DNA from: Oculina patagonica | Taxonomy: Eukaryota | Assembly (NCBI RefSeq): GCF_052425735.1 | Contig: NC_135770.1 | Span: forward strand, 5,332,001-5,396,000 | Length of the DNA stretch: 64,000 nt | Direction of reading: 5' to 3' | Shown here: positions 2,683 to 41,317 of the stretch, in pieces | Layout: each line of letters starts with the position of its first letter | Numbering within the stretch: position 1 is the stretch's first letter | The notes under the pieces: model-generated | Databases searched by the model: none | Seen by the model: only the letters and a program-made list of their open reading frames with translations | What the model was told of the DNA's origin: nothing | Program-made: the position numbers and the translations under genes

Positions 2683-4413
2683 CTATGAAACCACTGTACA
2701 TTCCTTGAGAACTTCTTTTGGTATTCGTAGACTACAAATGTCATACTTTTCAGTACCTGGTGAAACAATGGAACAAAATTTCCACTCATTGCTTTCAGCA
2801 TCATACTCCTGCAAAGACATTTCCTGTGAATCATCTTGTCCGAAGCAACCACACACATATATCTTTCCCTTGAAGCTCACTGCACTCATAAAATCAACTC
2901 TTGAAACAACTGTACTTGCAATGCTACTCCACACATCAACAGCTGGGTCGTACACTTCACAGAATTTGGACTTTGTTGCACCTTCTCCTAGGCCTCCAAA
3001 CACAACCACTTTCTGATTGACAGCTACACCACATGCATTGAATCTTCCTTCTAAAGTTGGAGCAACCCTCCCCCAAGATTTTTCTGCAGCATCAAATCTC
3101 TCGACAATCTTTAGCTTGCACCCATCTTTGTTGCCTCCAACTGCATACAGGAAATTTTTGCTAGCCACAGCACATATGCCATATCTTGCAACACTCAAGG
3201 AAGTAATCTTTTGCCACAAGTTGGTCTCGGGATTGAACCTTTGCACTGTGCTCAATAGCATGTTATTTTTGTCTGCTCCACCTATAACATACAGAAACCC
3301 CTGGAAAGTAACAACAGCAGCAAACCGAATTGCTTGATTGAAGGACTTTAAAGGAGTCCAAGTGTTTGTTGTTGGATCGTAGCATTCCGCAGGATAGCCA
3401 TCTGTATTTCCTCCAATACAATACATTCTTCTGTGACACGAACTCGTTGATTGAGAATATTTGAGGCGTTTAGAAAACATATAGGCCAACTTGTACCACT
3501 TGTTCTCTGAAGGTATGTAACACAATGTACTCTTGTGTGTCCCACGTGCACAAATGACATCTTCATGTGTCTTCATGCAGTTCCTTGGTGGCTGAGCAAA
3601 ATAGCCTTCTTCTGTACCACTAAATACCATTTTCATGGCATCTAACGTCACATTCAAGCAGTCTAAATTGCATTTAATCAAGGGATTTGATAAAACTACG
3701 TTGAATAGAAAGTCACGGGTAATGTAAATAAAACGAATGTGACGAAGCAAGTCGGAAACACTTTGATTTCTACTCTCATTTCTTGCGATCCACTTAATTA
3801 GAACATTGAAAACCTCTTCCTCTCCTTCTACGACGATTTCATCGCTTGAGATCCACTCCTCGACTTGAGTGCTGCTTAAATTAAAAAATTCTTCAGTTTC
3901 AGCTACAACAACAAAGTTTGCCAGAATGAAATCCTTCGCTTTTTTCTGAAGATCTTCACACCGATACCTTTCAGCCAGATAATAAGCCGTGATGCAGCTG
4001 GAAAAGGACAAGGCTTGTGCAATAACCTTGCCACATAAATCTTTCAAGGTTGGGAGAAGAAAATAATCTGCTGCTGCCATTAAATCACAGGCATTGGCTT
4101 CACTGATGTCAACACGACCTGTGTAGAGATACTTCAACACTTCTTCCATAACATCTTTGGTTATCTGTTCCAATCGGATCACTCCTTCTTTCTTTTCTTT
4201 CATGTCGCTGTTAAAAGCGTTGAAAAAGAACGGACTTGCTGCACATAACACGATTCTGTGAGCTTTAAAACGAGCTTGATCGTCACCGGAGCCAACTTCT
4301 AGAATCACATCACAGCAATGTTCGTTTCTTCGCTGAATATCGAGGCGTTTCATTATTTCCACACAAAATTGATGCTCCTCAGTCTTTGCAATTGCTTCAA
4401 GTAGAGAATCCAT
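2683..4413 (-). CDS. Kelch-like BTB-BACK-Kelch protein, copy A (576 aa), intronless
   Basis: BTB motif (CDVILEV...FKAHRIVLCAASPFF...YLYTG), BACK motif (EEEVFNVLIKW...LLRHIRF) and Kelch repeats with GG doublets and Y-D-P...W. Confidence 0.95.
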   Translation of the reverse strand: MDSLLEAIAKTEEHQFCVEIMKRLDIQRRNEHCCDVILEVGSGDDQARFKAHRIVLCAASPFFFNAFNSDMKEKKEGVIRLEQITKDVMEEVLKYLYTGRVDISEANACDLMAAADYFLLPTLKDLCGKVIAQALSFSSCITAYYLAERYRCEDLQKKAKDFILANFVVVAETEEFFNLSSTQVEEWISSDEIVVEGEEEVFNVLIKWIARNESRNQSVSDLLRHIRFIYITRDFLFNVVLSNPLIKCNLDCLNVTLDAMKMVFSGTEEGYFAQPPRNCMKTHEDVICARGTHKSTLCYIPSENKWYKLAYMFSKRLKYSQSTSSCHRRMYCIGGNTDGYPAECYDPTTNTWTPLKSFNQAIRFAAVVTFQGFLYVIGGADKNNMLLSTVQRFNPETNLWQKITSLSVARYGICAVASKNFLYAVGGNKDGCKLKIVERFDAAEKSWGRVAPTLEGRFNACGVAVNQKVVVFGGLGEGATKSKFCEVYDPAVDVWSSIASTVVSRVDFMSAVSFKGKIYVCGCFGQDDSQEMSLQEYDAESNEWKFCSIVSPGTEKYDICSLRIPKEVLKECTVVS

Positions 4414-4499
4414 GGCTAGGCTGAGTTGAAATCACAGTGAAGCGGCTAAAAGGAAAGAACACCTGAGAAAAACGACTTGGAAGAGCTCGATTTTGATCA

Positions 4500-4625
4500 A
4501 ATGTTCGAGGCGCATGGCGCGCGAAATTTGATGCCGTCGGGGGCGTTGCCGCAGGACATTAGCAGAGCCCGCAGTCAGGTAAAAATTCCCGCCAAAAGAA
4601 AACCGGGAAGCGCGGGAAGTGAAGC
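4500..4625 (-). promoter_or_regulatory. Conserved CpG-rich proximal promoter / 5' leader of the KLHL copies with E2F-like motifs
   Basis: GCGCGAAA (4519-4526), TTCCCGCCAAAA (4586-4597) and CGCGGGAAGT (4611-4620). The block recurs upstream of all six copies; F lacks the middle motif and D has a variant of it. Confidence 0.5.
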
Positions 4626-4808
4626 ATCTGGGCGCCCAATGCAAAAATAATGATGGCAGTGAGGAGTCTAAGGAGATACTATTATTATTTGTGACATCAA
4701 GACCAGTAAGTTCCAATTCTTATAAAGTCACAGAGGCGGCGGAGCGTTTTCGAACGTGGATGGCTACCGGCTATGACTCCCTGTCCCAAAAATACTCTGC
4801 ATGCATGT

Positions 4809-5040
4809 TAGGGGTATCAAATGGCATGAAATGGTCTTTGCGAGCATGCGAGCACAGCGTTTTTCTTTGCGAGCACGAGCATTGACAAAAATTAGCCTTG
4901 CGAGCAACGAGCACTTTTCGAAAAGCTACCCCACTAAAAACCGAGCATGCGAGCACTTGTAAAAATGTGCGAGCACGAGCAAACGAGCACCCACTCAAAT
5001 TTTGCGACCATTCCAAGCAAAAGCTTAATTTTGCGAGCAT
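4809..5040. mobile_element. Copy-specific MITE fragment with internal TTTGCGAGCACGAGCA repeats
   Basis: Absent from the paralogous region upstream of copy B (~10480) and bounded by GCATGTT direct repeats. Confidence 0.6.
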
Positions 5041-5632
5041 GTTTCTATATTTGGAGCCACTTTTTCCGTTTAATACAGCAACTTTTTGATTTCTGAGCAG
5101 TTTCCGGATCGAAGATTTACGAACATTCTCCTATTGTTGTTCGATGGTCATACGGATGTTGACGATCGTTTGTCGAACTTTTCCGAAGATAGACGTAGTT
5201 TTCCGAAGACTTCCAAGGAAGTTTCAAAGATGTTTGAACTCACTTACGAGCCGGAATGCCGGAATATCGCGAAGAAACAATTTAACGCTGCGCTCGCGAT
5301 ATTTTGGGCACCAAAACGTGGCTACAGCGCCCTTGGGCTCCTGCTATGAGTTATCCTTTAATACAATAAGTTATTCCAGGCAAGGTTCTGTTGCTATCAT
5401 GGGCCATGTTATACAACAACAATCACTTTTATAATAGCAGATTTAAAAAAATAAATGCAAGGTTTTCTCCTTGAATTTTTATCAGTAGCCCTTGCATAAT
5501 AAAATACAAAAACGTAGCCCTTGCATTTTAATTGGTCAGCAAAGTAGGTGAGCAGCAAAACTTGTGACGTCAGCATGATTGAGTGACTCTTAATCCGGCT
5601 ACCCAAGAAAACCATCACGTAAATTTGAAATT

Positions 5633-5747
5633 ATGTAATGTATATGAAATGATTCAATATGAACGCGGATGTATATGAGAGTGATAAATGATCGTCGCAG
5701 TGAATTTCCAATAAAGAATTGAATAAAGAAGCCGAAAAAAAAATTCA

Positions 5748-5781
<34 letters not shown>

Positions 5782-6450
5782 GATACCGGTGCGGCTCTAC
5801 CAACTGAGCTATTGAAGCCACAATTGGGAGCGAGGTAATTATACGGAAGGAAAATAAAAAGATTAAAGAACGCGGGTAGAGAGGTAAATGATCGTCGCAG
5901 TGAATAAAAGAATGAAAAGAAGCGAAAAAAAACAGGGCCACGACCGAACCGTGCGATGCCTACAATGAGAGAAGCATGGAGCGATATAAGTGGGAGATAG
6001 CTGAGTCGCGTGAGAAGTAAGAAGCGAAAAAAAAAGCAACGGACGAAGTGACCCCGCAACGGCGATGCCACCATGGATTGAAGCCAATGAGCGATTAAGT
6101 GGAGGTTAGCGGTGCGTCGAATTGTAGAAGCCTGAAACAGCCGGACGTACCCCGACGCGAGCTCACCTAGAGAAGCACAAGGGAGGGAAATTGAAAAGGG
6201 GAAACGAAGAAGAAGCCGAAACGGACCGCGAGTCGATCCACGAGCAAAGCAAAAAACTGAAGCCGCAGAAGAAACACACACACTCCTCTCAGGGATGAAC
6301 CAAGACCTCGCCCCAATGTGTGGCCAAAGCCAGTTGGTAGAGCCGCACCGACGCGGAGGTCGCCTTAGCCCTGTTTTTTTTTTTTTTTCAGGCTTCTTTA
6401 TTCCAATTGCTTAAATTGGAAATTCACTGCGACGATCATTTATCACTCTC
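5633..6450. mobile_element. tRNA-derived SINE-like element with an inverted partial copy and a 12-bp TSD
   Basis: TSD AAATTTGAAATT at 5621-5632 and 6451-6462. GAGAGTGATAAATGATCGTCGCAGTGAATT (~5677) is inverted at ~6420-6450. The interior is degenerate. Confidence 0.8.
5749..5819 (-). other. tRNA-like SINE head (Pol III A/B boxes), not a functional tRNA
   Basis: GGCTTCA/TGAAGCC acceptor-like stem, TAGCTCAGTTGG A box, GGTTCGAATCC B box and a following T-run; the anticodon arm is irregular. Confidence 0.75.
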
Positions 6451-8383
6451 AAATTTGAAATTGTTGTGAATTGGTCATTACAATCAACAGCGCGCGGTAA
6501 TAACGAAGCTTGATATCATATTTTGTTGAAGGGTTTGAAGGGATAAAATGAAAACTAGGATTTGGGCAATTTTTTAGTGAGACAATGGGGCATCGCAACT
6601 GGAAATGGGATTTGTATACTTCGGGAAAACAGTAGGCTGGAAAATGGGATTTGGGGAAAAATGTGGTCTGGGAAATGGGATTTTATCCCCATTGAGGACC
6701 CTCTTCTAGGGGGGTCCGGGGGCATGCCCCCCCCCCTGGAAATTTTTTTTAAATGGATATGTGCTGAGATGCAATCTGGTGTATTTTGAGACACAACCTT
6801 GATATATTTTCACCGTAATTTTATATTGTTTTTTGGTCATCACATGATTAGGTTTTGACAATGTTAGCTCGGCTGAGACGAAGAGTTCCTATTGCGCTAT
6901 TTATACCCTACAAAGAAGTGAATAAAAGAGATAAACAGCGGCAATGTTTCAGTTCTTAACTTATCTTCATAGCGATGGAAAATTTCTAGATGATATATTG
7001 ATTTATCTATGTACTGTATAAATTATCACAAATTTTTTTGGGGGGAGAAGCTTCTACCCCTGAACACCTCTAGATAGAACCCTGACTGTTTTAAACCTTT
7101 TAATAAAACAATTTTTCCCAGTAACAGAACAGACATACTTGTTGATGGTTGGATTTACTATTATAGCAGTGTTAAAAAAAATAAACCTTTGTGGTATATC
7201 TCTCTTCTTTTTTTCATGTGGTATTTATCTGTTAAAAACAAATCCTTATTAAACCAAGCAACTAACTCCTACTTCATTTTTATCCATTCCGACATTAAAG
7301 ATTTTAAATCTTAACTATCCAGTCTGCTGATTAAACTATATTGAGTTTCATGGCTGCATGGCTATCTTGTAACAGATTTATCACAACATTTCGTGAACTG
7401 TTTAGCTTTCATGTCTTTCAACCTTTAAAACGTCACTTGTCAGGCTATGAAATCCAAAAACGATTTCCATTAATGTTCAAATGCAGACTAGATAAAATAA
7501 TTTTAAATGCGTTTGTTAGGACTGAATGTAAAATAAACTGATAGGGACAAGGTTGCCAATCACTTTTTTCATCAATTTCTTGCGTCTCCAGGGATGCGGA
7601 GCCATGGGGGGGGGGGGGAATTTGCTGATAAAATAAAGACTTACTAAGAGAACAGCCTCTTAAGTCCCCCCCCCCTATTTCAAGTCACTAGTCACCCTCC
7701 TCCGGTCCCCCCAATTAGAAAAAATGTTCCACCATCCTGGTCTTGTCTACAGTAGTGACTACCTGCGATGTGTGAGTCAAAGTACTTTCTTTCTTTTACT
7801 GATCTCGACTCTAATTCTGGCTGGTTTCGGTTTACATCAAACCAATCTAAATAAAATGTCATCTCAGACATGATTTCCACAATGCCCCGTCACAAGCGAA
7901 ACACTTCATTTGTGTTCAGACTTAGCATGTTTTAACCTAGTGTGAACACAGTTTTATAATGCAGCCTTGTATTAATAAGTAAATTAATTAATTTTTTTAT
8001 TTTCCAAGGGAAACATGAACCTCAGTCAAATCTTGGACAAAGTCCAATTTTCTGGCTCACTGCTAATTGGTCAGTAGTACAATGAATACCCAAATTTTTG
8101 TGTTTTTTAACAGTGGATGGTGGGCAGCAGACAAGCAACTTTTACAGGAATTGCTCTGAACTAAACATCACAGTGGTTTTGAAAATGGTCAGCTCTTGAA
8201 TATTTGTAAACGATCAACACGACTTGGGCATTTGACTTGGACTTGACTTGTGGTCAGATTACACTTGCCAAATGGATAAACTATAATAATATTTACTGTT
8301 CACACATTATTTTGCACCAGTACTGATTTGACAGGGTCTCACATATACAACTAAGTTGTACCAGACAGTCATGTAATCACCAA

Positions 8384-10111
8384 CTATGAAACCACTGTAC
8401 ATTCTTTCAGAACTTCTTTTGGTATTCGTAGACTACAAATGTTATACTTTTCACCGCCTAGTGAAATGCTGGAACAAGATTTCCACTCATTGCTTTCGGC
8501 ATCATACTCCTGCAAAGACATTTGCTGGAAACCATCTTGTTCAAAGCAGCCGCACACATATATTTTTCCCTCGAAACTCACTGCACTTAAAAGAGTATCT
8601 CTTGAAACAACTTTACTCACAATGCTACTCCAAGTGTCAAGGGCTGGGTGATACACTTCACAGAATGTTGTCTCCGTCACACCATCTGCTAGGCCTCCAA
8701 ACACAAACACTTTCTGATTGACAGCTGCACCACATGCAGTGGATCTTTTTTCAAGAGTTGGAGCAACCCTACTCCAAGATTTTTCTGCTGCATCAAATTT
8801 TTCTACAATCTTCAGCTTGCACCCTTTTGTGTTGCCTCCAACTGCATACAGGAAATTTTTGCCAGCCACAGCACATATGCCATATCTTGCAACACTCAAA
8901 GAAGTTGTCTTTTGCCACAAGTTTGTCTCAGGATTGTATCTTTGTACGGTGCTCAATAGCTTATTTTTGTCAATGCCACCCATGACATACAAGAATCCCT
9001 GGAAAGTAACAACAGCAGCAAACTCGATTGTTTGATTGAAGGACTTCACAGGGGTCCAAGTGTTTGATGATGGATCATAGCATTCCGCTGGACAGCCACC
9101 TGCATTTCCTCCAATACAATACATTTTTCTGTGACATGAACTGGTCGACTGAGAAAACTTTGGCCGTTTGGACAGCATTGTAGCCAACTTGTACCACTTG
9201 TTCTCTGAAGGTACGAAACACAATGTACTCTTGTGTGTACCACATGCAACAATAACATCTTCGTATGTCTTCATGCAGTTTCTAGGTGGCTGAGCAAAAT
9301 AGCACTCCTCTGTACCACTAAACACCAATTTCATGGCATTTAAGACTATATGCAAGATTTCTTTATTGTCGTTTATCAAGGGATTTGATAAAATGACGTT
9401 AAATAGAAAGTCACGTGTTATGTAAATAAAGCGAATGTGACGAAAAAAGTCGGAAACACTTTGATTTCTACTCTCATCTCTTGCGATCCACTTCAGTACA
9501 ACGTCGAAAACGTCCTCCTCTCCTTTTACAATGATTTCATCGCTTGAGATCCACTCCTCGACTTGAGTGCTGCTCAAATTCAAAAATTCTTCAGTTTCAG
9601 CTACAGCAACAAAGTTTGCCAGAATGAAATCCCTCGCTTTAATCTGCAGATCTTTACACCGATACCTTTCAGCCAGATAATAAGCCGTGATGCAGCTGGA
9701 AAAAGACAAGGCTTCTGCAATAACGTTGCTACACAAATTTTTCAAGGTTGGGAGAAGAAAATAATCTGCTGCTGCCATCAAATCACAGGCATTGGCTTCA
9801 CCGATGTCAACATGACCTGTGTAGAGATACTTCAACACTTCTTCCATAACAGCTTTGCTCATCTCTTCCAATCGGATCACTCCTTCTTTCTTTTCTTTCA
9901 TGTCGCTGTTAAAAGCGTTGAAAAAGAACGGACTTGCTGCACATAAGACGATTCTGTGAGCTTTCAAACGAGCTTGATCGTCACCGGAGCCAACTTCTAG
10001 AATCACATCACAGCAATGTTCGTTTCTTCGCTGAATATCGAGGCGTTTCATTATTTCCACACAAAATTGTTGCTCCTCAGTCTTTGCAATTGCCTCAAGA
10101 AGAGAATCCAT
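8384..10111 (-). CDS. Kelch-like BTB-BACK-Kelch protein, copy B (575 aa), intronless
   Basis: Same domain motifs as copy A and colinear with it. Confidence 0.95.
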   Translation of the reverse strand: MDSLLEAIAKTEEQQFCVEIMKRLDIQRRNEHCCDVILEVGSGDDQARLKAHRIVLCAASPFFFNAFNSDMKEKKEGVIRLEEMSKAVMEEVLKYLYTGHVDIGEANACDLMAAADYFLLPTLKNLCSNVIAEALSFSSCITAYYLAERYRCKDLQIKARDFILANFVAVAETEEFLNLSSTQVEEWISSDEIIVKGEEDVFDVVLKWIARDESRNQSVSDFFRHIRFIYITRDFLFNVILSNPLINDNKEILHIVLNAMKLVFSGTEECYFAQPPRNCMKTYEDVIVACGTHKSTLCFVPSENKWYKLATMLSKRPKFSQSTSSCHRKMYCIGGNAGGCPAECYDPSSNTWTPVKSFNQTIEFAAVVTFQGFLYVMGGIDKNKLLSTVQRYNPETNLWQKTTSLSVARYGICAVAGKNFLYAVGGNTKGCKLKIVEKFDAAEKSWSRVAPTLEKRSTACGAAVNQKVFVFGGLADGVTETTFCEVYHPALDTWSSIVSKVVSRDTLLSAVSFEGKIYVCGCFEQDGFQQMSLQEYDAESNEWKSCSSISLGGEKYNICSLRIPKEVLKECTVVS

Positions 10112-11216
10112 GGTTTGGCTGAGTTGTTAATACAATAAAGCGGCTAAAAGGAGAGAACGCCTCAGCAAAACGAATGGAAGAGCTCGATTTTGATGAAATG
10201 TTCTGGCGCGAAATTTGATGCCGTCGGGGGCGTTGCTGCTGTACATTAACGGAGCCCGCAGTCAGGTAAAGGTTCCCGCCAAAAAAGAAAACCGGGAAGC
10301 GCGGGAAGTGAAGCATCTGGGCGCCCAACCTATGCGAAAATAATGATCGCAGTGAGGAGTCTAAGGAGTTTTGACATCAAGACCCGTAAGGTCTAATTCT
10401 GATCTCCTATAATAAAGTTACAGAGGCGGCGAAGCGTTTTGGAATGTGGGGGGCTATGACTCCCTGTCGCAAAAATGCTTGGCATGTTTCCATATCTGGA
10501 GCCACTTTTTCCGTTTATAATACAGCAACTTCTAGATTTCCGAGCAGTTTCCAGACCGAAGATTTACGCACATTCTCCGATTGTTGTCCGATGGTAATAC
10601 GAATGTTGACGATCGTTTGTCGAACTTTACCGAAATTGTAAACGAAGAGTTTCCGGAGACTTCCAAGGAAGTTTCATTTTTTCAAAGAAGTTTGAACTCA
10701 CTCACAAGACGGAATATCTTGACAAACCAATTTCGTTGCGCTCGCGATATTCTCGGAGTTAAAACGGGGGAGCGGGGCTGAGCCCCCAATTTTTCGGGTT
10801 TTTTTTTTGGGGGGGGGGGGCTGAGCCCCCAATTTTTCGCTTGGGGGAGAGGGGGGCTACAGGCCCCCTGTACCCCCTGCTCCGCCACCTATGATTTATC
10901 CCGTACAATTAGTTATTCCAGGCAAGGTGCTGTTACCTGATCATGGGCAGTTTTGTTCATCAACAATCACCTTTATATAATAGCAGATTGAGGAAAATAA
11001 ATGCAAGGTTTTCTCCTTGAATTTTTATCAGTAGCCCTTGCACTTTTGTTTTATTGGAAGGTCAGCAAAGTAGGTGGGCAGCAAAACTTGTGATGTCAGC
11101 ATGATTGAGTGACTCTTATTCAGACTACCCAAGTAAACCATCACAAAATGTCGAATTTTGTTGAAATTGGTCATTACAATCAACAGCGGTATTAACTAAG
11201 CTTGATATTATATTTT

Positions 11217-13918: not shown

Positions 13919-13983
13919 CTAAAGGCTTGTGTGTACAATGTATACAGAGAAAATACAAGTGACTCGTGGGATGTCCCATAGTA

Positions 13984-16344: not shown

Positions 16345-17093
16345 GGTTAGGCTGAGTTGTTAACACAGTAAAGCGGCTAAAAGGAAAAAACTTCAGCAAA
16401 ACAGCTGGAAGAGCTCGACTTTTGATCAAATGTTCGAGGCGCATTGCGCGCGAAATTTGATGCCGTCTTGGGCGTTGCCGCAGGACATTAGCGGAGCCCG
16501 CAGTCAGGTAAAAATTCCCGCCAAAAGAAAACCGGGAAGCGCGGGAAGTGAAGCAACTAATGCGAAAATAATGATGACAACTTAAAAGATGTGACATCAA
16601 GACCAGTAAGGTCCATTTTGTCCTTATAAAGTTACAGGGTGGAGCGTTTTGGAACGTGTTTTCATATTTGGAGGGGGGGGGGGGGGGGGGGGGGGGTCTT
16701 GGAGGCACTTTTTCCGGTCTTGCAACTTATTGATTTCTAAGCAGTTTCTAGGCCGAAGATTTCCGAACATTCTCCGATTGTTGTTGGAGGGTCATACGAA
16801 CGTTTCCGATCGTTTTACGAACTGAAGATTAGCGAAGATGTTTGAACTGACTCACGAGACTGATTAGGGGGGACTGAGCCTTCCAAATTTTTATTTGGGG
16901 AGGGGGGGGGGGCTACAGCCCCATGTCCCCCTGCTTTGCCGCCTCCCAGTTATCCCACGCAAGGTGCTGTTTCTATCATGGGCCGTGTTAAGTTATAAAT
17001 CAACAATCACCTTTGAGAAAAATAAATGCACTACCCAAGCAACCCTTTACAAAATGTGGACTTTGTTGAAATCGTTATGAATTGGTCAGGATA

Positions 17094-17145: not shown

Positions 17146-17178
<33 letters not shown>

Positions 17179-27096: not shown

Positions 27097-27203
27097 TTAA
27101 GTTACTGTTTATTGTTCACTTATTATTTTGCATCAGTACTGATTTGTCAGGCTTTCGCATATACAACTGAGTCGTACCAGACCGTCATCACTGTAATCAC
27201 CAA

Positions 27204-28922: not shown

Positions 28923-29608
28923 GATAAGGCTGAGTGGTGAACACAGTAAAGCGGCTAAAAGGAAAGAACGCCTCAGCAAAACGACTCGGAAGAGCTCGAT
29001 TTTGATCAAATGTTCGAGGCACATGGCGCGCGAAATTTGATGCCGTCGGGGACGTTGCCGCTGTACATTATCGCAGCCCGCAGTCAGGTAAAAGTTCCCG
29101 CCAAAGAAAACCGTGAAACGCGGGAAGTGAAGCATCTGGACGCCCAGCCGCCCAGTGCGAAAAAAATGTGACAGCATAGGAGATGTACATGTGACATCAA
29201 GACCAGTATTAATAAAGGTCCATTTGTCTTACAAAGTTACAGAGGCGGCGGAGTGTTCTGGAACGTGGGGGAACGTGTTTTCATATTTGGAGGCACTTTT
29301 TCCGGTCTTGCAACTCCTTGATTCCTAAGCAGTTTCTAGACCGAAGATTTCCGAACATTCTCCGATTGTTGTTCGAGGGTCATACGAACGTTCCCGACTT
29401 TTCTGAAGATTAACAAAGATGTTTGAACTGACTCACGAGACGGATTATCTTGACAAACCAATTTTACGCTGCGCTCTTGATATTTTCGGCACCAAAACGT
29501 GAGGTGGGGGGGGGGGACTGAGAACTCCAAATTTCGTTTTCTTGGGAGGGGGGGTCGGGGCTACAGTCCCCCTGCCCCGCCACCTCCGCGTTATCCCTTA
29601 CAATCGTA

Positions 29609-29783: not shown

Positions 29784-31344
29784 TATTTGTAATTCCAGAC
29801 AAGATGCTGTTACTATCATGGGCGGTGCTAAGTTATACTTCAACAATCACCTTTGAGAAAAATAAATGTACGGTTTTCTCCTTGAATCTTTACCAGTAGC
29901 CCTTGCATTTTTATTGGATGGTCAGCAAAGTAGGAAAGCAGCAAAATTTGTGATGCCAGCATGATTGAGTGACTCTTATTCAGACTACCCAAATAACCCT
30001 TTACAAAATGTGGACTTTGTTGTGATTTGTTCATGATAATCAGCAGCACTAATAATTGAGAAGTCTGAAAGGATAAAATGGGAACTGGAATGTGGGCAAA
30101 TTTTCACTGGGATAATGAGATTTGATTCACTGGACTCCGAATCACAAACAAAGAGACAATAGAATTGGGATTAAGATTTGGAAAATCAGGAAAACAATAG
30201 GCTGGGAAATGGGATTTATAGCCTCCCTTAAGGACTCTATGCCTCTTTATTGTGACAGACAGATACACGTTTTGAAATGTTCCAAGACCTTTTAATAGAA
30301 CAAATTTTCCTTATAACAGAACAGACATCCTTTTTAATGGTTGGATTTACTATAATAGTGGTAATTATCAAATACTTAAAAGTATTTTTTAAAAATAAAC
30401 TTTCCTTTTATTCTCTTGTTTTCTTCCCATGTGGTATTTTTCATTTTAAATCAAGCCACTTAGTTCTACTTCATATATCCACTCTGACATTTTAAATCTT
30501 AAAACCATCCACTCTGCTTATTAAACTGCATTGAGTTTTGGTTCATGCTGCCTTGTTACAGATTTATTACAACATTTCGTGAACTGTTAAGCTTTCATGT
30601 TTTTCAACCTTTAAAACGTCACTTGTCAGGCTATGAAATCAAACAACGATTTTAAATGCATTTGTTAGGACTGAATGTAAAATACATTAACAGTGATCAG
30701 GTTGCCAATCACTCTTTTTATCAATTTCTTGGGTCTCCAGGGATGGCAGAGTCATGTAACTTGCGTGGGGGGGGGGGGGGAAATTTGCTGATAAAATAAA
30801 GACTTACTAAGAGAAGATAAGATAAGAAGAGTCTCTTAAGGCCCCCCCCCCCACTTCAAGTGACTAGTCACCCTCCCCCCCACCAATTTAAAAAATGTTC
30901 TGCCATCCCTGGTCTCGCCTAGAGTAGTGATTACCTGCGATGTGTGAGTCAGAGTAATTTCTAAGTGTCCTTTACAAGTGGGCTTACAATGCTTTCATAC
31001 TGGCCAATCAAATTGACTGAACATACTGAACAAGCATACCGACCATTTCATTATGAAGTTCAAAACAAGTCCTGTAGTTGTTAAACAAACATTGCAGGTC
31101 TCTGACCATACTCCACAATGACATAAAATAAAACAAGCTCAACAGTAGGGGCTATGATAAACACAGTTACACTTAAAACCTGGTACATTCAGATTATCAA
31201 TTCCATACATTTTAATTTAATCATTCATTCATTTTTAAATTTTACGTAATTTTTTTGGATGAGTGCATTTCACTTTTGCAGAACCAAAATCTGAGTGGCA
31301 GTTGTCCAATGGACAAGTTTTTCTGCCCAAGTACAAATGTTGTA

Positions 31345-32727: not shown

Positions 32728-33678
32728 TTAACTGTTTACTGTTTACTCATTATTTTGCACCAGTAATGATTTGTCAGGCTCTTGCATATACAACTGAGTC
32801 ATACCAGACCGTCATCACTGCATGTAATCACCAACTATGAAACCACCTCACATTCATTCAGAACTTCTTTTTGTATTCGTAGACTGCAAATGTTGTAATT
32901 TTCAGGGCCCAGTAAAGGAACATTGCAACAAAATTTCCACTTATTGCTTTCAGCATCATACTCCTGCAAAGAGACTTTGTTGGTATCATCTTGTTCAAAA
33001 CAACCACACACATATATTTTCCCCTTGAAACTCAATGCACTTAAGAAACCAACTCTTGAAACAACTGTACTTGCAATGCTACTCCACACATCAATAGCTG
33101 GGTCGTACACTTCACAGAAGTTTGCCTTTTTTTCATCATCTCTTAGGCCTCCAAACAGAAACACTTTCTCATTGACAGCTGCACCACATGCACCGGTTCT
33201 TCCTTCAAGAGTTGGAGCAATCCTATGCCACACATTTTCTTCATCAAATCTTTCAACAATCTTCAGGCGGGATCCTCCAATTGCATACAGGAAATTCTTG
33301 CAAGCTACAGCACATATGCCACTCCTTGCAATGCTCAGAGATGCCACCATTTGCCACCGGTTTGTCTCAGGATTGTACGTTTGCACAGTGCTGAATTTCA
33401 TGTTGTTTTTGTCTGCTCCACCTATGACATACAATAATCCCTGGAAAGTAACAACAGCAGCAAACTTAATTTCTTGATCAAAGGACTTCAAGGGAGCCCA
33501 TGTGTTGGTTAATGCATCATAGCACTCTGCTGGATGGCCATCTGCATTTTCTCCAATACAATACATCTTTCTGTGACATGAACTGGTGGACTGGCAGTAC
33601 ATTGGCCGATTGGCTAGCATCTTGGCCAACTTGTACCACTTGTTCTCTGAAGGTATGTAACACAATGTACTCTTACGT

Positions 33679-34106
33679 TGTCGAAGACTAGGACTAGTGA
33701 TTGCGTGACTTTACTTGAGTGGATGTTTTATTTAGGAATCCCACGTGGGGTATCAGATTATGTAATGTCAATGAGTGTTTTGTAGGACGAACCGATAAAG
33801 ATATGTGCCAGAATGTGTCAAGGCCGGAAATTCATAATTAGCCCGTCTGCACGTAATGCTTGTATAAGAAGAAAACAGTTAGTGTTTCGAGTTTAGTTGA
33901 TCTGTTGACCTGTTGAGTTGAGTTGAGTCTTTGACCAGTTACGCCTTTTTAACCTGAGAATTCCGTGATTGTGAAAGTGACCGCGACTTCAAGCCATTAA
34001 ACGACGTAAACCTGTGAGTATCATTTCTTGCACTGAATTGTTTGCCTTAGCTTTTTGTGAGATTCGTGGGGAATCCCGCTACCCTGCCTTGCTAGCGTTT
34101 CCCACA
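33679..34106 (+). repeat. 5' LTR (428 bp)
   Basis: TGTCGAAGACTAGG...GTTTCCCACA; by eye it differs from the 3' LTR by one substitution and a 5-bp indel. Confidence 0.95.
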
Positions 34107-34164
34107 CCTGGCACCTCCGACGGGACCGCCTAACCGATCTAAAACAAGGAAATTTACCGCGATA

Positions 34165-37100
34165 ATGGAAGCTTTAGAAACCAAGCTAGAACAGCTGAAG
34201 TTAGCAGTGAACAGAAGCGGTTCGATAGTGGAATCAAACAATGAAGCTGCGATAGAGAGGCATCTCTCTGCCATAAAAGCCTTAACAATGGAAGCCGACA
34301 AATTAAAACGAACTGTTGAAGAACAAAAAATCGCCGAAAAAGTGGAGCTAGAAGAACTTAACCAGTGGAATGCAAGTGTTGATGCCAAGATTGTCGCTGC
34401 TGACGAGAGCGTCAGGCATCTGAAAACCACCTTAGAGGAATTTCATCAGAAAATGGAGCTGAAGAAACAAGAAAAGGATTTGGAATTCGAGAAGAAGTTG
34501 TTCGAAGCAAAATTGAAGTACCAAGCCGAGCTTCAAGTAGCGAAAGAACAAGCCGAAGCAGCGCAAATAAAAAACAAGCCTACAGATGAGGGATCAGGCC
34601 AAGAGCAAGCAGCAAAGCTACCCAAGCTTCAAATAGCTCGATTCAATGGCACTTATGAAGATTGGCCCAGGTTCTGGAACCAATTCGTGGAAATCATTGA
34701 CAAAGCGACCATGCCGGGCGTGACGAAGTTTGCCTACTTGAAGTCTTTCCTTGACTCGAAGGTGAAAAAACCGATAGAAGGGCTACCATTTTCACACGAA
34801 GGTTACAACAGAGCCAAGTCAATACTGTTGGACAAGTACGGTAAGGATTCAGAGATAATCAAGACCTACGCCCAGCAGATTTTCGACCTTCCTATCATAC
34901 CTAACCAGAATGCATACCGAATTCACGAATTTTCCGATAAATTGACTTTCGCAGTGCAGTCTTTACAGACAATGGGCAAACTAGAACAGGTTAACGGTTA
35001 TGTTGCGATGACTTTGGACAAGTTGCCAGCGATTAGAGGGGACTTGGTGCGAACAGACCCATCGTGGGAAAACTGGACCTTCGACAAGCTGACAGAAGCG
35101 TTGCGCCTTTGGACGCGGAGAAATCCGATCAGTAAACAAGATGATAGAAATCAGCAAGATGACAGAAACCGCCGTGATGACAGGAAGAGAGATAAGCCCC
35201 CATTTCGGGTGTTCAACACCCAACAAAAGAATGGTGCACGCAAGCCATCTTGCGTGTACTGCGACGCGACAGAGCATCGAGCCTTTCACTGCCCCAGTGT
35301 TGTTGACGTGGCTAAACGACGGTCTATCCTACTTCAGAAGAGGTTGTGTTTCAATTGCACCGGCCCCCACAAAGCTGAATATTGTCAGAGCAAGATGGTA
35401 TGTCAGAAATGCAGAAAGAAGCATCACACGTCAATTTGTGACAGCGATCAACAGGATCCAAGGTCTGAAGGATTATTAACGGCCCATCAACGTGACAAAA
35501 CAGAAGTGGTGTACCCTGTGGTTTTAGTCAAGATCAATGGAATTAAAACAAGAGCCCTACTTGACACCGGAGCTGGAAGTTCTTACGCCTCAGCTCGGCT
35601 AATCAACGCCTTGCATACGAAACCGGCCGAAACTCAAACGAAACAAATCGAAATGATGCTGGGCTCCATGACAACCAAAGTAGAAATGTACAATGTCAAC
35701 GTGACATCCCTGAGTGGCGATTTCAGTATGAGCGTGACAGTATCCAAGGTCGACAAACCGGAACTCATGACTCTTGAAAATCCCAAGTATGAAGAGTTGA
35801 CGAAACGGTACACGCACCTGAGTGATGTTTACATGGACGACAAAGATGGCAAACCGAAACTACCCATTCATCTGGTGTTAGGTGCTTCCGAGTACGCAAG
35901 AATCAAGACTAGCACTCCACCGAAGATAGCTTTATCAGGTCAACCTGTGGCGGAGAAGACAACACTCGGCTGGACAATCATGTCACCAGGCCACGAACAC
36001 GAAGCCAGTAACACGTTTCTTACCCAGACAACCAGCGTGGACTTCGAACAGCTCTGCCGTTTAGACGTCCTTGGCCTCGCCGACGCCTCAGCAAACGACC
36101 AGGATGTGGTCTACTCTGAGTTCAAGGAACAGTTGATACGTCATCCCGACGGATACTATCAAACGGGTCTCCCCTGGAAAGGAAGCCATCCACAGTTGCC
36201 CACAAACAAGTCTGGAAGTATTAAAAGACTTCAGCAGCTCGTAAGAAAACTCGATCGCACCAATGCCTATGACCAGTATGACGCCATTATTCAGGAACAG
36301 AAAGAAGAAGGAATCGTCGAACCAGCTCCGGCCGAACCCAAAGGGACTGAATTTTACATACCCCATAGAGCAGTAGTTCGAGAAAACGCGGAAACTACCA
36401 AGTTAAGGATCGTCTATGATGCCTCCGCCAAAGAAAATCCCAGCCAGCCATCTTTAAACGACTGCCTTCATCCAGGACCACCCTTACAGAACCTATTATG
36501 GAACGTTCTAATCAGAGCTCGTTTCTACCCCGTATTGCTGGCAGGAGATCTGCAGAAGGCTTTCTTACAAGTACGCATTAAAGAAGAAGAAAGGGATGCC
36601 TTGCGATTTCATTGGAAACCACGTGATCAATCAGCCATCGAAACTTACAGATTCACCAGAGCCCTGTTCGGCCTCACCTCTTCACCCTTTCTGTTGGGTG
36701 GAGTTATACAGCAACATCTAGACGCGTGGGAGCAACGAGAACCGGAGTTGGTTGCCCAAATCAGAAAGAGCCTGTACGTTGATGATTTGATATCTGGTGC
36801 ATCAACAGTGCCGCAAGCTCAACAGCAAAAGGAAGGATCGATTAAAATCTTTGGTGATGCCAAATTTGTTCTACACAAGTGGAACTCAAATGCACCTGAG
36901 CTAGAGAGAGACGGTGACCCTGGTGACAGCGAGGATCTGAGCTTTGCTAAACAACAGTTGGGACCACCAACAACACTAACGAAGCTGCTAGGACTGCCTT
37001 GGGACAAGATTGCCGACACGTTAAGCGTTTGTTTCCCACAGCAACCGGTTGAACCAACCAGAAGAGGAATCTTGTCGCAGCTGGCCAAAATCTACGACCC

Positions 37101-39378
37101 CCTGGGGTTGGTATCACCCACAACGCTCTGTGGAAAGCTCATATTCCGAGATATCTGCGAGACAAAGTTACCCTGGGACGTGCCCATCCCGATAGATTTG
37201 GATAAGAGGTGGCGGAAGTGGCTTTGTAACCTGCCAGAAACCTTGAGTGTAAAGCGAGCAGTTGCACCGTTTAGAGAGCCAATTCAGTTTATCCAACTCC
37301 ACGCCTTTGGAGATGCAAGCTCACAAGGAGTCTGTGCCGCAGTTTACGCAGTTGTTGGCCAAGAGTCAGGGACCACCCAGGGTCTCATCACCTCCAAGTC
37401 TCGCCTATCAAAACAGAACCTAACCATACCAAGATTGGAGCTTGTTGCAGGCCACATGGCGGCGAACCTGGCAGTTAACGTTCGAGATGCATTGCAGAAT
37501 TGTAATCCAGTTATCCACTGCTGGTTGGACAGCACTGTCGCCCTTTACTGGATAAACGGATGTGGAGAGTATCGCCAGTTCGTTGCAAATCGAGTGCAAA
37601 AGATTCAGCAACACCAAGGAATTGTCTGGCACCATGTCCCCACAGACCAAAACCCTGCTGACCTAGGAAGCAGAGGCGGAAGTGTGATCAGCGCACCACT
37701 TTGGATGAACGGGCCACCATGGTTACCCTATCCGGATCAGTGGCCCCCCAATATTGAAATCAAGGCCTCATCCGAGTCTCAAGCAGAAGCCAAGGTGACA
37801 AAGGAAATCCTTGCCATAGCCCTACCTGAGAGAGATGTGTTCAGCGAGCTGTTGGAAAAATATAGCCTGTTGAAAACTCTGCGCATTTGCGCATGGATCG
37901 CCAGATTCCTCGCCAACTGCAGAAACCCGAAGCCAAGAGGACTAAAGGGACCACTGACCACAGACGAAATAAGGCTCCAGGAAGCCTGGTGGATCAAAAG
38001 AGCTCAAGCCGAATCCACAAGCACAAAGCATTTCCAAGCGGACAAGCTTCAACTCAATTTGCAGTTAAACAACAGCGGGATACTGGAGTGTAGAGGAAGA
38101 ATCGTTGGGTTGTACCCTACCTACCTGCCAGATGACAACTTGTTCACCTTCAAGTTTGTACAGCAAGCGCATCTTACGACCATTCACGGGGGAGTTACAC
38201 TTACCATGACCAAGGTTAGAGAAACCCACTGGGTCCCTCGCCTGAGAAAATTGACGAAGAAGGTCCTCAAAGGTTGTTGGGGTTGCAAGAGATTTCAAGC
38301 CCAGGCTTACCAGTCTCCACCGCCAGGATGTCTACCACTCACCAGGACCCAAGGAGTGACACCCTACGAAACTATTGGAGTCGACTTTGCTGGCCCTATA
38401 AAGTATCGTGTTACACAGAAAACAGAGGGTAAGGCCTACCTAGTCCTTTACGCGTGCAGCCTAACAAGGGGAGTGTACCTGGATCTCCTTCCAAGTTTAG
38501 AAACCAACAAGTTTCTCACAAGTTTGAAGGGTTTCATAACCAGACGTGGCCGCCCTCGCGTTATCTACTCAGACAATGGGAAGACGTTTACAGCCGCCGC
38601 TGACTGGTTGAGCAAAGTTAGGAAAGATGAAAAATTCCATGACGGCCTTGTACATCTTGATATTGCCTGGAAATTTAACCTCAGCCGCGCCCCATGGTGG
38701 GGTGGTCAATTTGAGAGGCTCATAGGCGTGTTCAAGTCCGCCTTTCGTAAAGCAGTCGGGAACGGCACCTTATCCTGGAGCGAATTGTGTGACGTCGTGC
38801 TCGATGTAGAAATTGCCATAAATGGCCGACCTCTGAGTTACCTAGAGGAAGATGTTGAAATGCCAGTGCTCACTCCAAGCTCTATGCTGCACCTTCGGCC
38901 GACCCAGCTCCCTGAGCTAAGCGCACATCACATACAAGAATCGGATCTGAGAAAGAGAGCTAAGTACCTCCTCCGTTGCAAGGAAGCGATGTGGTCGAGG
39001 TGGTCAAAAGAATACGTGCGGAGTCTGAGAGAGCGGCACAGCAAGAGCGGAGGAGAACAGACTCCCCACCCTTCAGTTGGAGACGTTGTTATTATTCAAG
39101 ACGAGTCTCGAAATCGAAACTCATGGAAACTAGGAATTGTGGATAAGTTGATTGTAGGACGTGACGGAATAGTACGTGGGGCCAAGATGCGAGCTGGAAA
39201 AGGAGTAATGGAACGAGCCGTACAGCACCTTTACCCCCTGGAATTGTCTGTCGACCGCACATCCAAAGCAACCCTGGATCCAACAACACCAGCTTTCAAG
39301 CCAAAACGAGTTGCAGCTGAAACAGCGAATCTGAGAATCCAGGAGATTGCACAAGCGGAGCAATCCAGCGACATTTAA
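34165..39378 (+). CDS. BEL/Pao gag-pol polyprotein (1737 aa)
   Basis: DUF1759-like gag (LPKLQIARFNG..W..FW), three Cys/His knuckles, protease LLDTGAGSSY, RT YVDD, Pao RNase H (HAFGDAS...TIPRLEL), integrase HHCC plus DFAGP/SDNG/GGQFERL, and a C-terminal DUF5641-like region. Confidence 0.97.
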   Translation: MEALETKLEQLKLAVNRSGSIVESNNEAAIERHLSAIKALTMEADKLKRTVEEQKIAEKVELEELNQWNASVDAKIVAADESVRHLKTTLEEFHQKMELKKQEKDLEFEKKLFEAKLKYQAELQVAKEQAEAAQIKNKPTDEGSGQEQAAKLPKLQIARFNGTYEDWPRFWNQFVEIIDKATMPGVTKFAYLKSFLDSKVKKPIEGLPFSHEGYNRAKSILLDKYGKDSEIIKTYAQQIFDLPIIPNQNAYRIHEFSDKLTFAVQSLQTMGKLEQVNGYVAMTLDKLPAIRGDLVRTDPSWENWTFDKLTEALRLWTRRNPISKQDDRNQQDDRNRRDDRKRDKPPFRVFNTQQKNGARKPSCVYCDATEHRAFHCPSVVDVAKRRSILLQKRLCFNCTGPHKAEYCQSKMVCQKCRKKHHTSICDSDQQDPRSEGLLTAHQRDKTEVVYPVVLVKINGIKTRALLDTGAGSSYASARLINALHTKPAETQTKQIEMMLGSMTTKVEMYNVNVTSLSGDFSMSVTVSKVDKPELMTLENPKYEELTKRYTHLSDVYMDDKDGKPKLPIHLVLGASEYARIKTSTPPKIALSGQPVAEKTTLGWTIMSPGHEHEASNTFLTQTTSVDFEQLCRLDVLGLADASANDQDVVYSEFKEQLIRHPDGYYQTGLPWKGSHPQLPTNKSGSIKRLQQLVRKLDRTNAYDQYDAIIQEQKEEGIVEPAPAEPKGTEFYIPHRAVVRENAETTKLRIVYDASAKENPSQPSLNDCLHPGPPLQNLLWNVLIRARFYPVLLAGDLQKAFLQVRIKEEERDALRFHWKPRDQSAIETYRFTRALFGLTSSPFLLGGVIQQHLDAWEQREPELVAQIRKSLYVDDLISGASTVPQAQQQKEGSIKIFGDAKFVLHKWNSNAPELERDGDPGDSEDLSFAKQQLGPPTTLTKLLGLPWDKIADTLSVCFPQQPVEPTRRGILSQLAKIYDPLGLVSPTTLCGKLIFRDICETKLPWDVPIPIDLDKRWRKWLCNLPETLSVKRAVAPFREPIQFIQLHAFGDASSQGVCAAVYAVVGQESGTTQGLITSKSRLSKQNLTIPRLELVAGHMAANLAVNVRDALQNCNPVIHCWLDSTVALYWINGCGEYRQFVANRVQKIQQHQGIVWHHVPTDQNPADLGSRGGSVISAPLWMNGPPWLPYPDQWPPNIEIKASSESQAEAKVTKEILAIALPERDVFSELLEKYSLLKTLRICAWIARFLANCRNPKPRGLKGPLTTDEIRLQEAWWIKRAQAESTSTKHFQADKLQLNLQLNNSGILECRGRIVGLYPTYLPDDNLFTFKFVQQAHLTTIHGGVTLTMTKVRETHWVPRLRKLTKKVLKGCWGCKRFQAQAYQSPPPGCLPLTRTQGVTPYETIGVDFAGPIKYRVTQKTEGKAYLVLYACSLTRGVYLDLLPSLETNKFLTSLKGFITRRGRPRVIYSDNGKTFTAAADWLSKVRKDEKFHDGLVHLDIAWKFNLSRAPWWGGQFERLIGVFKSAFRKAVGNGTLSWSELCDVVLDVEIAINGRPLSYLEEDVEMPVLTPSSMLHLRPTQLPELSAHHIQESDLRKRAKYLLRCKEAMWSRWSKEYVRSLRERHSKSGGEQTPHPSVGDVVIIQDESRNRNSWKLGIVDKLIVGRDGIVRGAKMRAGKGVMERAVQHLYPLELSVDRTSKATLDPTTPAFKPKRVAAETANLRIQEIAQAEQSSDI

Positions 39379-39567
39379 AGAACAATAATCAAGGACATTT
39401 TAACTTTTTGCTTGTTTATTAATCGAGGACATTTTAACTATTTGCTTAATTATTGATCGAGGACATTTTACCTTCGCTTGTTTAAGTAATAGCGGACATG
39501 ATTAACGAAAGTCCAGTCTCGAAAGAGAACATATATTCCTTAGAAAGAAATATATGGGGGGAGTGTG

Positions 39568-39990
39568 TGTCGAAGACTAGGACTAGTGATTGCGTGACTT
39601 TACTTGAGTGGATGTTTTATTTAGGAATCCCACGTGGGGTATCAGATTATGTAATGTCAATGAGTGTTTTGTAGGACGAACCGATAAAGATATGTGCCAG
39701 AATGTGTCAAAGCCGGAAATTCATAATTAGCCCGTCTGCACGTAATGCTTGTATAAGAAGAAAACAGTTAGTGTTTCGAGTTTAGTTGATCTGTTGACCT
39801 GTTGAGTTGAGTTGAGTCTTTGACCAGTTACGCCTTTTTAACCTGAGAATTCCGTGATTGTGAAAGTGACCGCGACTTCAAGCCATTAAACGACGTAAAC
39901 CTGTGAGTATCATTTCTTGCACTGAATTGTTTGCCTTTTTGTGAGATTCGTGGGGAATCCCGCTACCCTGCCTTGCTAGCGTTTCCCACA
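39568..39990 (+). repeat. 3' LTR (423 bp)
   Basis: Direct repeat of 33679-34106. Confidence 0.95.
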
Positions 39991-41317
39991 ACGTGTTCCA
40001 CGTGCAACAATGACATCTTCATGTGTCTTCATGCAGTTTCTTGGTGGCTGAGCAAAATAGCACTCCTCTGTACCACTAAACGCCAACTTCATGGCATCTA
40101 AGGCTATATTTGAGCACTCTTTATTGTCTTTTATCAAGGGATTTGATAAAATAACGTTGAATAAAAAGTCACGTCTAATGTAGATAAGACGAATGTGACA
40201 AAACAAGTCGGATAAATTTCGTTTTCTTCTTTTATTTTGTGCAATCCACTTCACTACAATTTTGAAAACGTCCTCCTCTCCTTTTACGATGATTTCATCG
40301 CTTGAGATCCACTCCTCGACTTGCGTGCTGCTCAAATTCAAAAATTCTACAGTTTCAGCTACAGCAACAAAGTTTGCCAGAATGAAATCCTTCGCTTTTA
40401 TCTGCAGATCTTCACACCGATACCTTTCCGCCAGATAATAAGCCGTGATGCAGCTGGAAAAAGACAAGGCTTGTGCAATAACGTTGCCACACAAATCTTT
40501 CAAGGTTGGGAGAAGAAAGAAATCTGCTGCTGCCATCAAATCACAGGCATTAGCTTCACTGATGTCAACACGACCTGTGTAGAGATACTTCAACACTTCT
40601 TCCATCACATCTTTGGTTATCTGTTCCAATCGGATCACTCCTTCTTTCTTTTCTTTCATGTCGCTGTTAAAAACGTTGAAAAAGAACGGACTTGCTGCAC
40701 ATAACACGATTCTGTGTGCTTTCAAACGAGCTTGATCGTCACCGGAGCCAACTTCTAGAATCACATCACAGCAATGTTCGTTTCTTCGCTGAATATCCAG
40801 GCGTTTCATTATTTCCACACAAAATTGATGCTCCTCAGTCTTTGAAATTGCCTCAAGCAGAGAATCCATGAGTGGGCTGAGTTTTATACACCGTAAAAGT
40901 GGCTAAAAGGAGAAAAACAACTTGGAAGAGCTCGATTTTGATCAAATGTTCGAGGCGCGGTTGGCGCGAAATTTGATGCCGTCGGGGGCGTTTCCGCTGT
41001 ACATTAGCGGAGCCCGCAGTGAGGTAAAAGCGCGGGAAGTGAAGATGTGAAAATGGTGGCGTAGTTATCGATAGTTAGCTTCCCTTTTATCCTTTTACAA
41101 TTAGCAGTTATTGCAGTCAAGTAAGGTGCTGTTTACTTAAATGGGGCGTCAAACATAGATTGGGAAAAAATAATTGCAAGAGACTAAAAAATGGTCAAAA
41201 ATCTACATTGCACAATGGGCTCCTGACATACAGGTAGGTATTTGTGAAACAGCCTTTTCAGTTCTGTGCAGTTGGATCGTAGCTGACTACACTTCAAAAG
41301 TTGAACTAACAACATTA

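Follow-up and report, generated by a model that had tools for sequence, protein, structure and literature searches.

A tandem array of KLHL-type CUL3 adaptor genes in the coral Oculina patagonica, with a shared docking module and probable positive selection at substrate-pocket codons

The genome of the coral Oculina patagonica (NCBI RefSeq assembly GCF_052425735.1) carries on contig NC_135770.1 a row of six related genes of the KLHL type, each encoding a BTB domain, a BACK domain and a Kelch propeller. They lie in a stretch of 64,000 nt (positions 5,332,001 to 5,396,000 of the forward strand), which is called the window throughout. We consider it probable that these genes form a tandem array of CUL3 adaptors, five of them intact and one recently disrupted, that share their ligase-docking module and whose substrate-pocket codons are positively selected. 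Under this mechanism, the copies would have one docking module in common and would differ in the proteins that they recruit for ubiquitylation. New specificities would arise from point substitutions, from in-frame loop insertions and deletions (indels), and from short conversion tracts that carry loop variants from one copy to another. The 5′ third of each gene and its promoter would be kept alike by 5′-biased gene conversion or unequal exchange, together with purifying selection on the BTB domain.

Layout of the array and identity of its genes

The six paralogous frames are arranged head to tail on the minus strand, 5.5-7.1 kb apart, in a window that contains no N. Frames A to E are uninterrupted and intronless, and F is split in two pieces. 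The first-pass annotation, which was made from the letters alone, had described six intronless KLHL genes in tandem. Six frames are indeed present, but copy F has been broken by a long terminal repeat (LTR) retrotransposon. The copies and the inserted element are located as follows.

Copy A: 2683-4413, minus strand; intact intronless BTB-BACK-Kelch gene of 576 amino acids (open reading frame, Pfam and AlphaFold2 model)
Copy B: 8384-10111, minus strand; intact, 575 amino acids (open reading frame and alignment)
Copy C: 14623-16344, minus strand; intact, 573 amino acids; the B-C loop of blade 4 has the short form
Copy D: 20098-21828, minus strand; intact, 576 amino acids counted from the conserved Met; the mechanical open reading frame extends to 21885
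Copy E: 27204-28922, minus strand; intact, 572 amino acids counted from the conserved Met
Copy F, 3′ half: 32835-33674, minus strand; Kelch blades 1-6, from residue 294 onward
Target-site duplication ACGT (4 bp): 33675-33678 and 39991-39994
Pao/BEL LTR retrotransposon: 33679-39990, plus strand; 6,312 bp, inserted in copy F
LTRs of the Pao/BEL element: 33679-34106 and 39568-39990
Pao/BEL gag-pol open reading frame: 34165-39378, plus strand; a single uninterrupted frame of 1737 amino acids
Copy F, 5′ half: 39991-40869, minus strand; BTB-BACK and the start of Kelch; one target-site duplicate (ACGT) forms its final 4 nt, 39991-39994

The element inside copy F carries the Pfam domains Peptidase_A17, DUF1759, RVT_1, Integrase_H2C2 and DUF5641. 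Its two LTRs are nearly identical, with a single substitution and a single 5-bp indel in 423 aligned nt (99.8% identity), which makes the insertion very recent and far younger than the duplication that separated E and F (synonymous divergence, dS, of 0.05-0.09). In-silico removal of the element and of one target-site duplicate restores an open frame of 572 codons, in which the 3′ half continues exactly from the 5′ half, and this restored copy F was used in the comparisons among copies. Copy F also carries G335E inside a GG doublet. In copy E, the frame extends upstream (to 29177), and this extension is not conserved in the other copies. An open reading frame on the plus strand at 27082-27846 was rejected as a mechanical artefact antisense to copy E.

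By every sequence and fold criterion that was applied, the array genes are KLHL-type proteins and predicted CUL3 adaptors. Pfam places a BTB domain (PF00651) at residues 27-133 (E = 1.4e-26), a BACK domain (PF07707) after it at residues 140-240 (E = 1.9e-26), and Kelch repeats in the C-terminal part (Kelch_1, E = 6.6e-32). An AlphaFold2 model of copy A, built on an alignment of 73 sequences, has a mean predicted local distance difference test score (pLDDT) of 83, rising above 90 in Kelch, where 24 strands form six four-stranded blades and the C-terminal strand closes blade 1. With the full-length model, Foldseek matches cryo-electron microscopy structures of KBTBD2-CUL3 and KLHL22-CUL3; the Kelch domain matches KEAP1, KLHL17 and KLHL20 at template modelling (TM) scores of 0.85-0.88. 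Residues 1-82 of the model have pLDDT below 50, though they belong to the most conserved part of the family. This may stem from a shallow, closely related alignment or from a BTB N terminus that depends on the (strand-swapped) dimer.

The BTB domain aligns with those of KLHL11, KLHL3 and KEAP1. Residues M71-K72-E73, a phi-x-E triad in the loop between alpha3 and beta4, align with F130-S131-E132 of KLHL11 and with M-S-E of KLHL3, and M71 and E73 are unchanged in all 73 relatives. In KLHL11, the F130-S131-E132 loop inserts into CUL3 (PMC3597819). Domain content, fold and the triad at the predicted CUL3 contact thus bear out the identity that the first-pass annotation had proposed. The coral's own CUL3 gene has multiple exons.

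The coral genes have BTB, BACK and a six-bladed Kelch domain in the same order as KEAP1, KLHL20, KLHL11 and KLHL3, with the phi-x-E triad conserved. They differ from vertebrate KLHL genes in that they are 20-27% identical to the solved structures, lack introns and occur in at least 150 copies in tandem clusters. Vertebrate KLHL genes number approximately 40-60 and are dispersed and single-copy.

Probable selection on the Kelch face

The substrate site of BTB-Kelch proteins is the upper face of the propeller, which is shaped by the D-A and B-C loops (PMC3597819). The KEAP1 contacts are Tyr334, Ser363, Arg380, Asn382, Arg415, His436, Arg483, Ser508, Tyr525 and Tyr572 (PMC4629420), and these residues occupy positions GG+1, GG+3, GG+6, Arg+1 or Arg+2 of their own blades. 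Variable positions of the coral copies match the GG+1 and GG+6 pocket residues (Tyr334, Arg380, His436, Arg483, Tyr525, Tyr572), and the variable Arg+1 corresponds to Ser363, Ser508, Ser555 and Ser602 (PMC4629420), an equivalence that is claimed only by within-blade position, the blade register of the KEAP1 alignment being ambiguous.

Kelch differences had been reported to cluster after the conserved Arg and after each GG doublet, and the four sets of motif strings listed for the six copies (ARxG, GRxxA, SRxxFx and the GG...LK indel) match the alignment exactly as quoted. Blade loops were assigned from the DSSP strand map of the copy A model and the KEAP1 alignment, and 30 contact positions (GG+1, +3 and +6; R+1 and +2) were fixed beforehand. 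At these positions the nonsynonymous divergence (dN) exceeds that in the remainder of Kelch by a factor of 2.4 (permutation P <=0.001 in both species, the second being another coral that is described below), so that the variation is clustered beyond chance. The dN/dS ratio (omega) is 0.55-0.59 in the top loops and 0.24-0.30 in strands and bottom loops. Top loops hold 25 of the 30 Kelch columns that vary most across the family, and in the codon alignment the codons on either side of the hypervariable ones are conserved down to their silent positions.

The youngest pair, E and F, is approximately 97% identical apart from a block of six residues in a B-C loop. Their Kelch domains differ at 19 residues, 16 of which lie in B-C or D-A loops. 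The block itself, residues 476-481 (E 27470-27495; F 33100-33125), reads GRGATE in one copy and RDDEKK in the other, with roughly 10 nucleotide changes in 21 nt. The second coral has a comparable LRNDR variant in a single gene (L037), and both species have the LR[D/N]D variant of blade 5. The block resembles a short cassette moved by conversion or, alternatively, an old variant that is shared. Loop length varies as well. The B-C loop of blade 4 (copy A 3115-3147) comes in two versions, GG followed by 4-5 residues and G[CS]xLK (long) and GGSxLK (short). Because both lengths occur in each coral species (loci L036 and L037 of the second coral), the length polymorphism is either older than their split or of multiple origin.

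Codon site models were fitted with our own likelihood program (GY94, F3x4, with branch lengths taken from M0 and rescaled by one factor). The combined data comprise 16 genes, namely the six window copies and ten genes from the second coral. For Kelch, the likelihood ratio statistic is 40.5 for M1a vs M2a (p = 1.6e-9), 51.8 for M7 vs M8 (p = 5.6e-12) and 43.1 for M8a vs M8 (p = 5.3e-11), and the selected class holds 7-9% of codons at an omega of 2.5-3.0. In the BTB and BACK/linker partitions of the same genes no selected class was found. There neither the M1a-M2a nor the M8a-M8 statistic reaches 1, and the M7-M8 statistic of 5.5 in BACK/linker (p = 0.065) is the highest of any comparison.

The Kelch signal recurs when the data are divided. 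The second coral alone gives a statistic of 18.8, and runs on each species separately yield similar omega values (approximately 2.9-3.1) and proportions (approximately 6-7%). When Kelch is cut into three gap-free segments with a separate tree for each, the statistics are 13.8, 13.7 and 5.3, a sum of 32.8 (p = 1e-5). In an independent clade of nine paralogues on other chromosomes, the statistic is 14.6 for Kelch (omega 2.8, 7.6% of codons) and 0.01 for BTB-BACK, and the selected sites 433 and 458 recur there.

Thirteen sites have an M8 posterior above 0.8 (315, 380, 384, 385, 386, 403, 411, 433, 458, 506, 507, 509 and 554, in copy A numbering). Eleven of the 13 are in B-C or D-A loops (Fisher p = 0.002), and the remaining two sit at the very start or end of an adjoining strand; above 0.95, all eight sites are in these loops. 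The positions that the earlier reader had singled out by eye reappear among them: the x of ARxG is 411, the x of GRxNA is 458, the xx of SRxx is 506 and 507, and the residues after GG are 380, 384-386 and 433.

A number of observations count against positive selection, or against the weight that the test can bear. The first-pass annotation had taken dN/dS at the top-face loops as the measure of its diversification claim. Averaged over whole loops or over the pre-chosen positions, omega is below 1 (0.55-0.74), and only 7-9% of codons exceed 1. For the 30 pre-chosen contacts omega is 0.65-0.72, with a confidence interval of 0.32-1.5 that spans 1, and relaxed constraint could explain much of the loop variability. 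The six window copies alone give a Kelch statistic of 7.96, which is weak and within the range of an inflated null. Recombination inflates the site-model test: in 20 M1a simulations on three differing segment trees that were then analysed with one tree, statistics ranged from 0 to 10.5 and six of the 20 exceeded 5.99, a false-positive rate of 30% at a nominal 5%. Because this mosaic-tree null is inflated, both the 14.6 of the nine-paralogue clade and the 7.96 of the window are weak when taken alone. The site posteriors are naive empirical Bayes values from an approximate implementation of our own. Some second-coral contigs are possibly haplotigs, so some sequences may be alleles and not paralogues.

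These observations could be read as meaning that there is no positive selection, that the loops of redundant duplicates are merely under relaxed constraint, and that the likelihood ratio signal is an artefact of conversion or recombination, of indel alignment or of the implementation. Whole-loop and contact omegas below 1, the contact confidence interval that spans 1, the six mosaic nulls above the nominal 5% cutoff, the low value for the window copies alone and the presence of conversion tracts inside Kelch all fit that explanation. We nonetheless regard it as unlikely. At 40-52, the combined statistic is four-fold the highest null value, and the signal survives restriction to gap-free columns with per-segment trees. 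Each species and the unrelated clade agree (omega approximately 2.8-3.0, approximately 6-8% of codons), BTB and BACK are free of signal in every data set, and the hypervariable codons sit between codons that are near-invariant even synonymously. A small class of Kelch codons with omega above 1 at predicted substrate-pocket positions is therefore supported, with the caveats given above.

The earlier proposal of diversifying selection consequently stands in part. A positively selected class confined to Kelch exceeds the mosaic null, but whole loops remain below 1 and the six copies by themselves give a weak signal. The M7 vs M8 comparison that had been suggested as a check, run here in our own implementation, gives 51.8 for Kelch with 16 genes. 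The hypervariable pocket positions are defined to the residue (copy A 380, 384-386, 411, 433, 458, 506-507 and 554), and substrate trapping and loop swaps can be designed from them.

Uniformity of the 5′ third and the presumed promoter

Pairwise Nei-Gojobori estimates among the six copies reveal a gradient of divergence along the gene.

Whole gene: dN 0.097, dS 0.262, dN/dS 0.37
BTB: dN 0.037, dS 0.118, dN/dS 0.32
Kelch: dN 0.136, dS 0.365, dN/dS 0.37

Overall, the copies are under purifying selection (omega approximately 0.37). The near-invariance of the N terminus that had been noticed by eye is real, since the first 85 codons have a dN of 0.035 vs 0.136 in Kelch. A stronger constraint on this constant module is not what sets it apart within the array, however: omega is 0.32 vs 0.37, and dS is three-fold lower in BTB. 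The uniformity of BTB within the array thus reflects lower divergence at silent sites too, and not a lower dN/dS. Along the coding sequence, nucleotide identity drops from 0.97 (5′ end) to 0.83 (3′ end). The 300 bp preceding the ATG have a mean identity between pairs of copies of 0.89-0.92, and the remaining spacers one of 0.45-0.78.

Comparison with the second coral extends this contrast. Within-species dS amounts to 0.49 of between-species dS in BTB vs 0.79 in Kelch. Each species forms a clade of its own in a BTB tree (support 81 and 100), where the tips are short and the branch that separates the species is long. In the Kelch tree the tips are long and O. patagonica is paraphyletic, with C, E and F grouping with the second coral (support 91). 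Copies E and F form a mosaic, their dS being 0-0.05 in linker and Kelch and 0.16 in BTB. A run-length test for conversion (GENECONV style) found one significant tract, between A and F and within Kelch (p <0.0003); it found none in BTB, where too few sites are polymorphic for the test to have power.

Purifying selection acts on BTB as well, because residues 21-100 are near-invariant (0.2-0.7 bits) among 73 relatives down to 52% identity, including relatives on other chromosomes. That it acts alone, without any concerted evolution, in a 5′ third that simply mutates or substitutes synonymously more slowly, seems to us doubtful, but this simpler explanation has points in its favour. Besides the conservation of BTB among distant relatives, between-species dS is also reduced there (0.25 vs 0.39 in Kelch), and the run-length test, for all its low power in BTB, detected nothing in that domain. 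The reduced between-species dS counts against homogenisation as the full account, and part of the 5′ uniformity may come from a lower synonymous rate instead of conversion. On the other side, BTB dN/dS equals that of Kelch (0.32 vs 0.37) and it is dS that differs. The drop in dS is larger within than between species (0.49 vs 0.79), BTB sequences are monophyletic by species while the Kelch tree has O. patagonica paraphyletic, E and F are near-identical in linker and Kelch and not in BTB (dS 0.16), and the non-coding 300 bp upstream are equally similar. A 5′-biased homogenisation on top of family-wide purifying selection is thus indicated, though not proven, as the explanation of the uniform BTB.

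In the nine-gene clade (C5 and C4), tree length is 1.84 for BTB-BACK vs 4.96 for Kelch at similar omega, from which it follows that low 5′ and high 3′ divergence is not peculiar to the window array. If homogenisation is the correct explanation, the dS contrast along the gene would be a clean case of 5′-biased homogenisation and 3′ diversification in an animal multigene family.

The uniformity extends into the flanks, where the following elements were recognized.

Conserved 5′ flank of copy A: 4414-4640, minus strand; presumed promoter and 5′ untranslated region, with an equivalent of approximately 220-300 bp upstream of B-F
E2F-like TTTTGGCGGGAA (gene strand): 4575-4597, 10262-10284 and 16504-16526; approximately 170 bp upstream of the ATG in A, B and C
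E2F-like motif in copy E: 29085-29105; T run one base shorter than in TTTTGGCGGGAA
Conserved 3′ flank of copy A: 2560-2682, minus strand; AGTAAA (AATAAA in E) approximately 90 nt past the stop

Copy D carries TTTTGACGGGAA in place of the E2F-like TTTTGGCGGGAA. The E2F-like motif adjoins a conserved CTTCACTTCCCGCGCTTCCCGG box, and the pair suggests a shared promoter, possibly of a cell-cycle type. The 3′ flank of copy A is presumed to be a short 3′ untranslated region.

Genome-wide expansion, expression and neighbouring features

A search of the 529-Mb assembly with copy A returned 77 scored matches among 713 candidates, mostly stop-free, uninterrupted frames of 570-640 codons. The BACK domain gave at least 150 matches (150 scored of 511 candidates), all with E <=1.6e-22, which form many tandem clusters across all large scaffolds. 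Because of these genome-wide BACK matches, the window array is seen to be one cluster of a very large expansion. Further intronless BTB-BACK-Kelch clusters lie at the following places, C13 being the contig of the window.

C5: 11.8-12.5 Mb and 13.66-13.72 Mb
C14: 8.32-8.40 Mb
C13: 25.0-25.26 Mb and 36.50-36.52 Mb
C7: 20.34-20.47 Mb
C4: 12.2-12.3 Mb and 48.69-48.82 Mb

The names that NCBI gives to the paralogues in the O. patagonica genome vary (KLHL3, 7, 11, 21 and 41a). In the second coral (ENA assembly ERZ25067872), at least 10 intact members of this subfamily are likewise found in arrays. The DNA upstream of copy F is collinear with that upstream of the first gene in one of these arrays, and the locus is therefore syntenic between the two corals. 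A viral or mobile origin of the array was rejected, both for this synteny together with the spread over all large scaffolds and for the absence of viral hallmark genes from the window, where only the Pao element and a fragment of a long interspersed nuclear element (LINE) were found.

At least half of the sampled words of copy A are present in 16 public runs from 7 studies, so copy A is a real and stable copy. Contigs from two runs that we guessed to be RNA cover its coding sequence with 0-1 mismatches at a depth of 20-60. In these runs, the depth of unique spacer is 0.5-7 in the first and 11-13 in the second, and in the first the coding sequence of copy A reaches 5-10 times the intergenic depth. 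This coverage is only suggestive of transcription. Two further searches gave no transcript evidence. No RNA-labelled run is listed among the public runs that contain copy A or copy C. In two poly(A) read sets of approximately 3.4 M reads each, compared with 2500-8499, no read maps to A or to the 3′ end of B, and the reads that matched this interval were partial matches to repeats.

Failed transcript searches, together with a copy F that is broken by a retrotransposon and bears G335E, would be expected if the array consisted of decaying, redundant or non-functional duplicates, that is, incipient pseudogenes with no current role. We consider this very improbable. Five frames of 572-576 codons remain open despite a dS of approximately 0.26-0.37, omega is 0.37 overall and 0.24-0.30 in strands and bottom loops, and the syntenic locus of the second coral keeps at least 10 intact genes. 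The insertion in copy F is itself very young, as its 99.8% LTR identity indicates.

Expansions of this kind have precedents. A 2006 study by Thomas in Genome Research reportedly found that MATH-BTB and F-box adaptors of nematodes and plants have expanded under positive selection. The coral genes resemble them as a lineage-specific tandem expansion of cullin-RING adaptors with a conserved docking domain and apparent selection on the substrate surface. They differ in that the recognition domain is a Kelch propeller and not MATH or FTH/FBA, in that the host is a cnidarian, and in that the docking module appears to be additionally homogenised at its 5′ end. Expanded, positively selected cullin-RING adaptors have been proposed to form an intracellular immune-like layer in nematodes and plants.

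Poxvirus BTB-Kelch proteins such as vaccinia A55 (bioRxiv 10.1101/461806) offer another comparison. These intronless BTB-BACK-Kelch proteins engage CUL3, with several paralogues in each genome. Those are viral genes that subvert host CUL3, whereas the coral genes are chromosomal, syntenic and found on every large scaffold. The literature on corals and cnidarians that was searched yielded no description of this Kelch/BTB expansion, and the one coral paper in which kelch comes up records such genes only as neighbours (PMC8001845). The array appears to be an adaptively diversifying repertoire of cullin-RING adaptors in a lineage and with an architecture that the searched literature does not describe.

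O. patagonica, whose symbiosis is facultative, is a classic model of Vibrio-associated bleaching. We tentatively raise the possibility, which we hold with far less confidence than the nature of the array itself, that stony corals have a germline repertoire of hundreds of intronless CUL3 adaptors for intracellular, degradation-based surveillance of proteins from pathogens, algal symbionts or mobile elements. Such a repertoire would combine a docking module and promoter kept uniform in concert with Kelch contacts and loop lengths that positive selection diversifies and short conversion tracts shuffle. If this were true, its members would be candidates for the recognition and disposal of microbial, symbiont or transposon proteins by the coral.

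Some spacer segments recur between the genes. The interval 23630-23929 (between D and E) is 93% identical to 30876-31175 (between E and F), and 17375-17650 (between C and D) is 93% identical to 30037-30312 (between E and F). Such segments, common to non-adjacent intergenic regions, are either repeats of a dispersed kind or remnants of how the array was duplicated. The other features of the window are as follows.

Tandem satellite with a 32-bp unit: 1-696; at least 14 register-shifted copies, 84-94% identity, decaying toward 696
Open reading frame of 456 amino acids: 49811-51181, plus strand; zf-RVT (PF13966) only; C-terminal fragment of a non-LTR retrotransposon
Transporter of the major facilitator superfamily (MFS), open reading frame of 511 amino acids: 52974-54509, plus strand; uninterrupted; MFS_1, E = 2.9e-21

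A plus-strand open reading frame of 214 amino acids (1-645) was set aside as an artefact of the 32-bp satellite. The MFS transporter is the first host gene outside the KLHL family that is encountered beyond the array.

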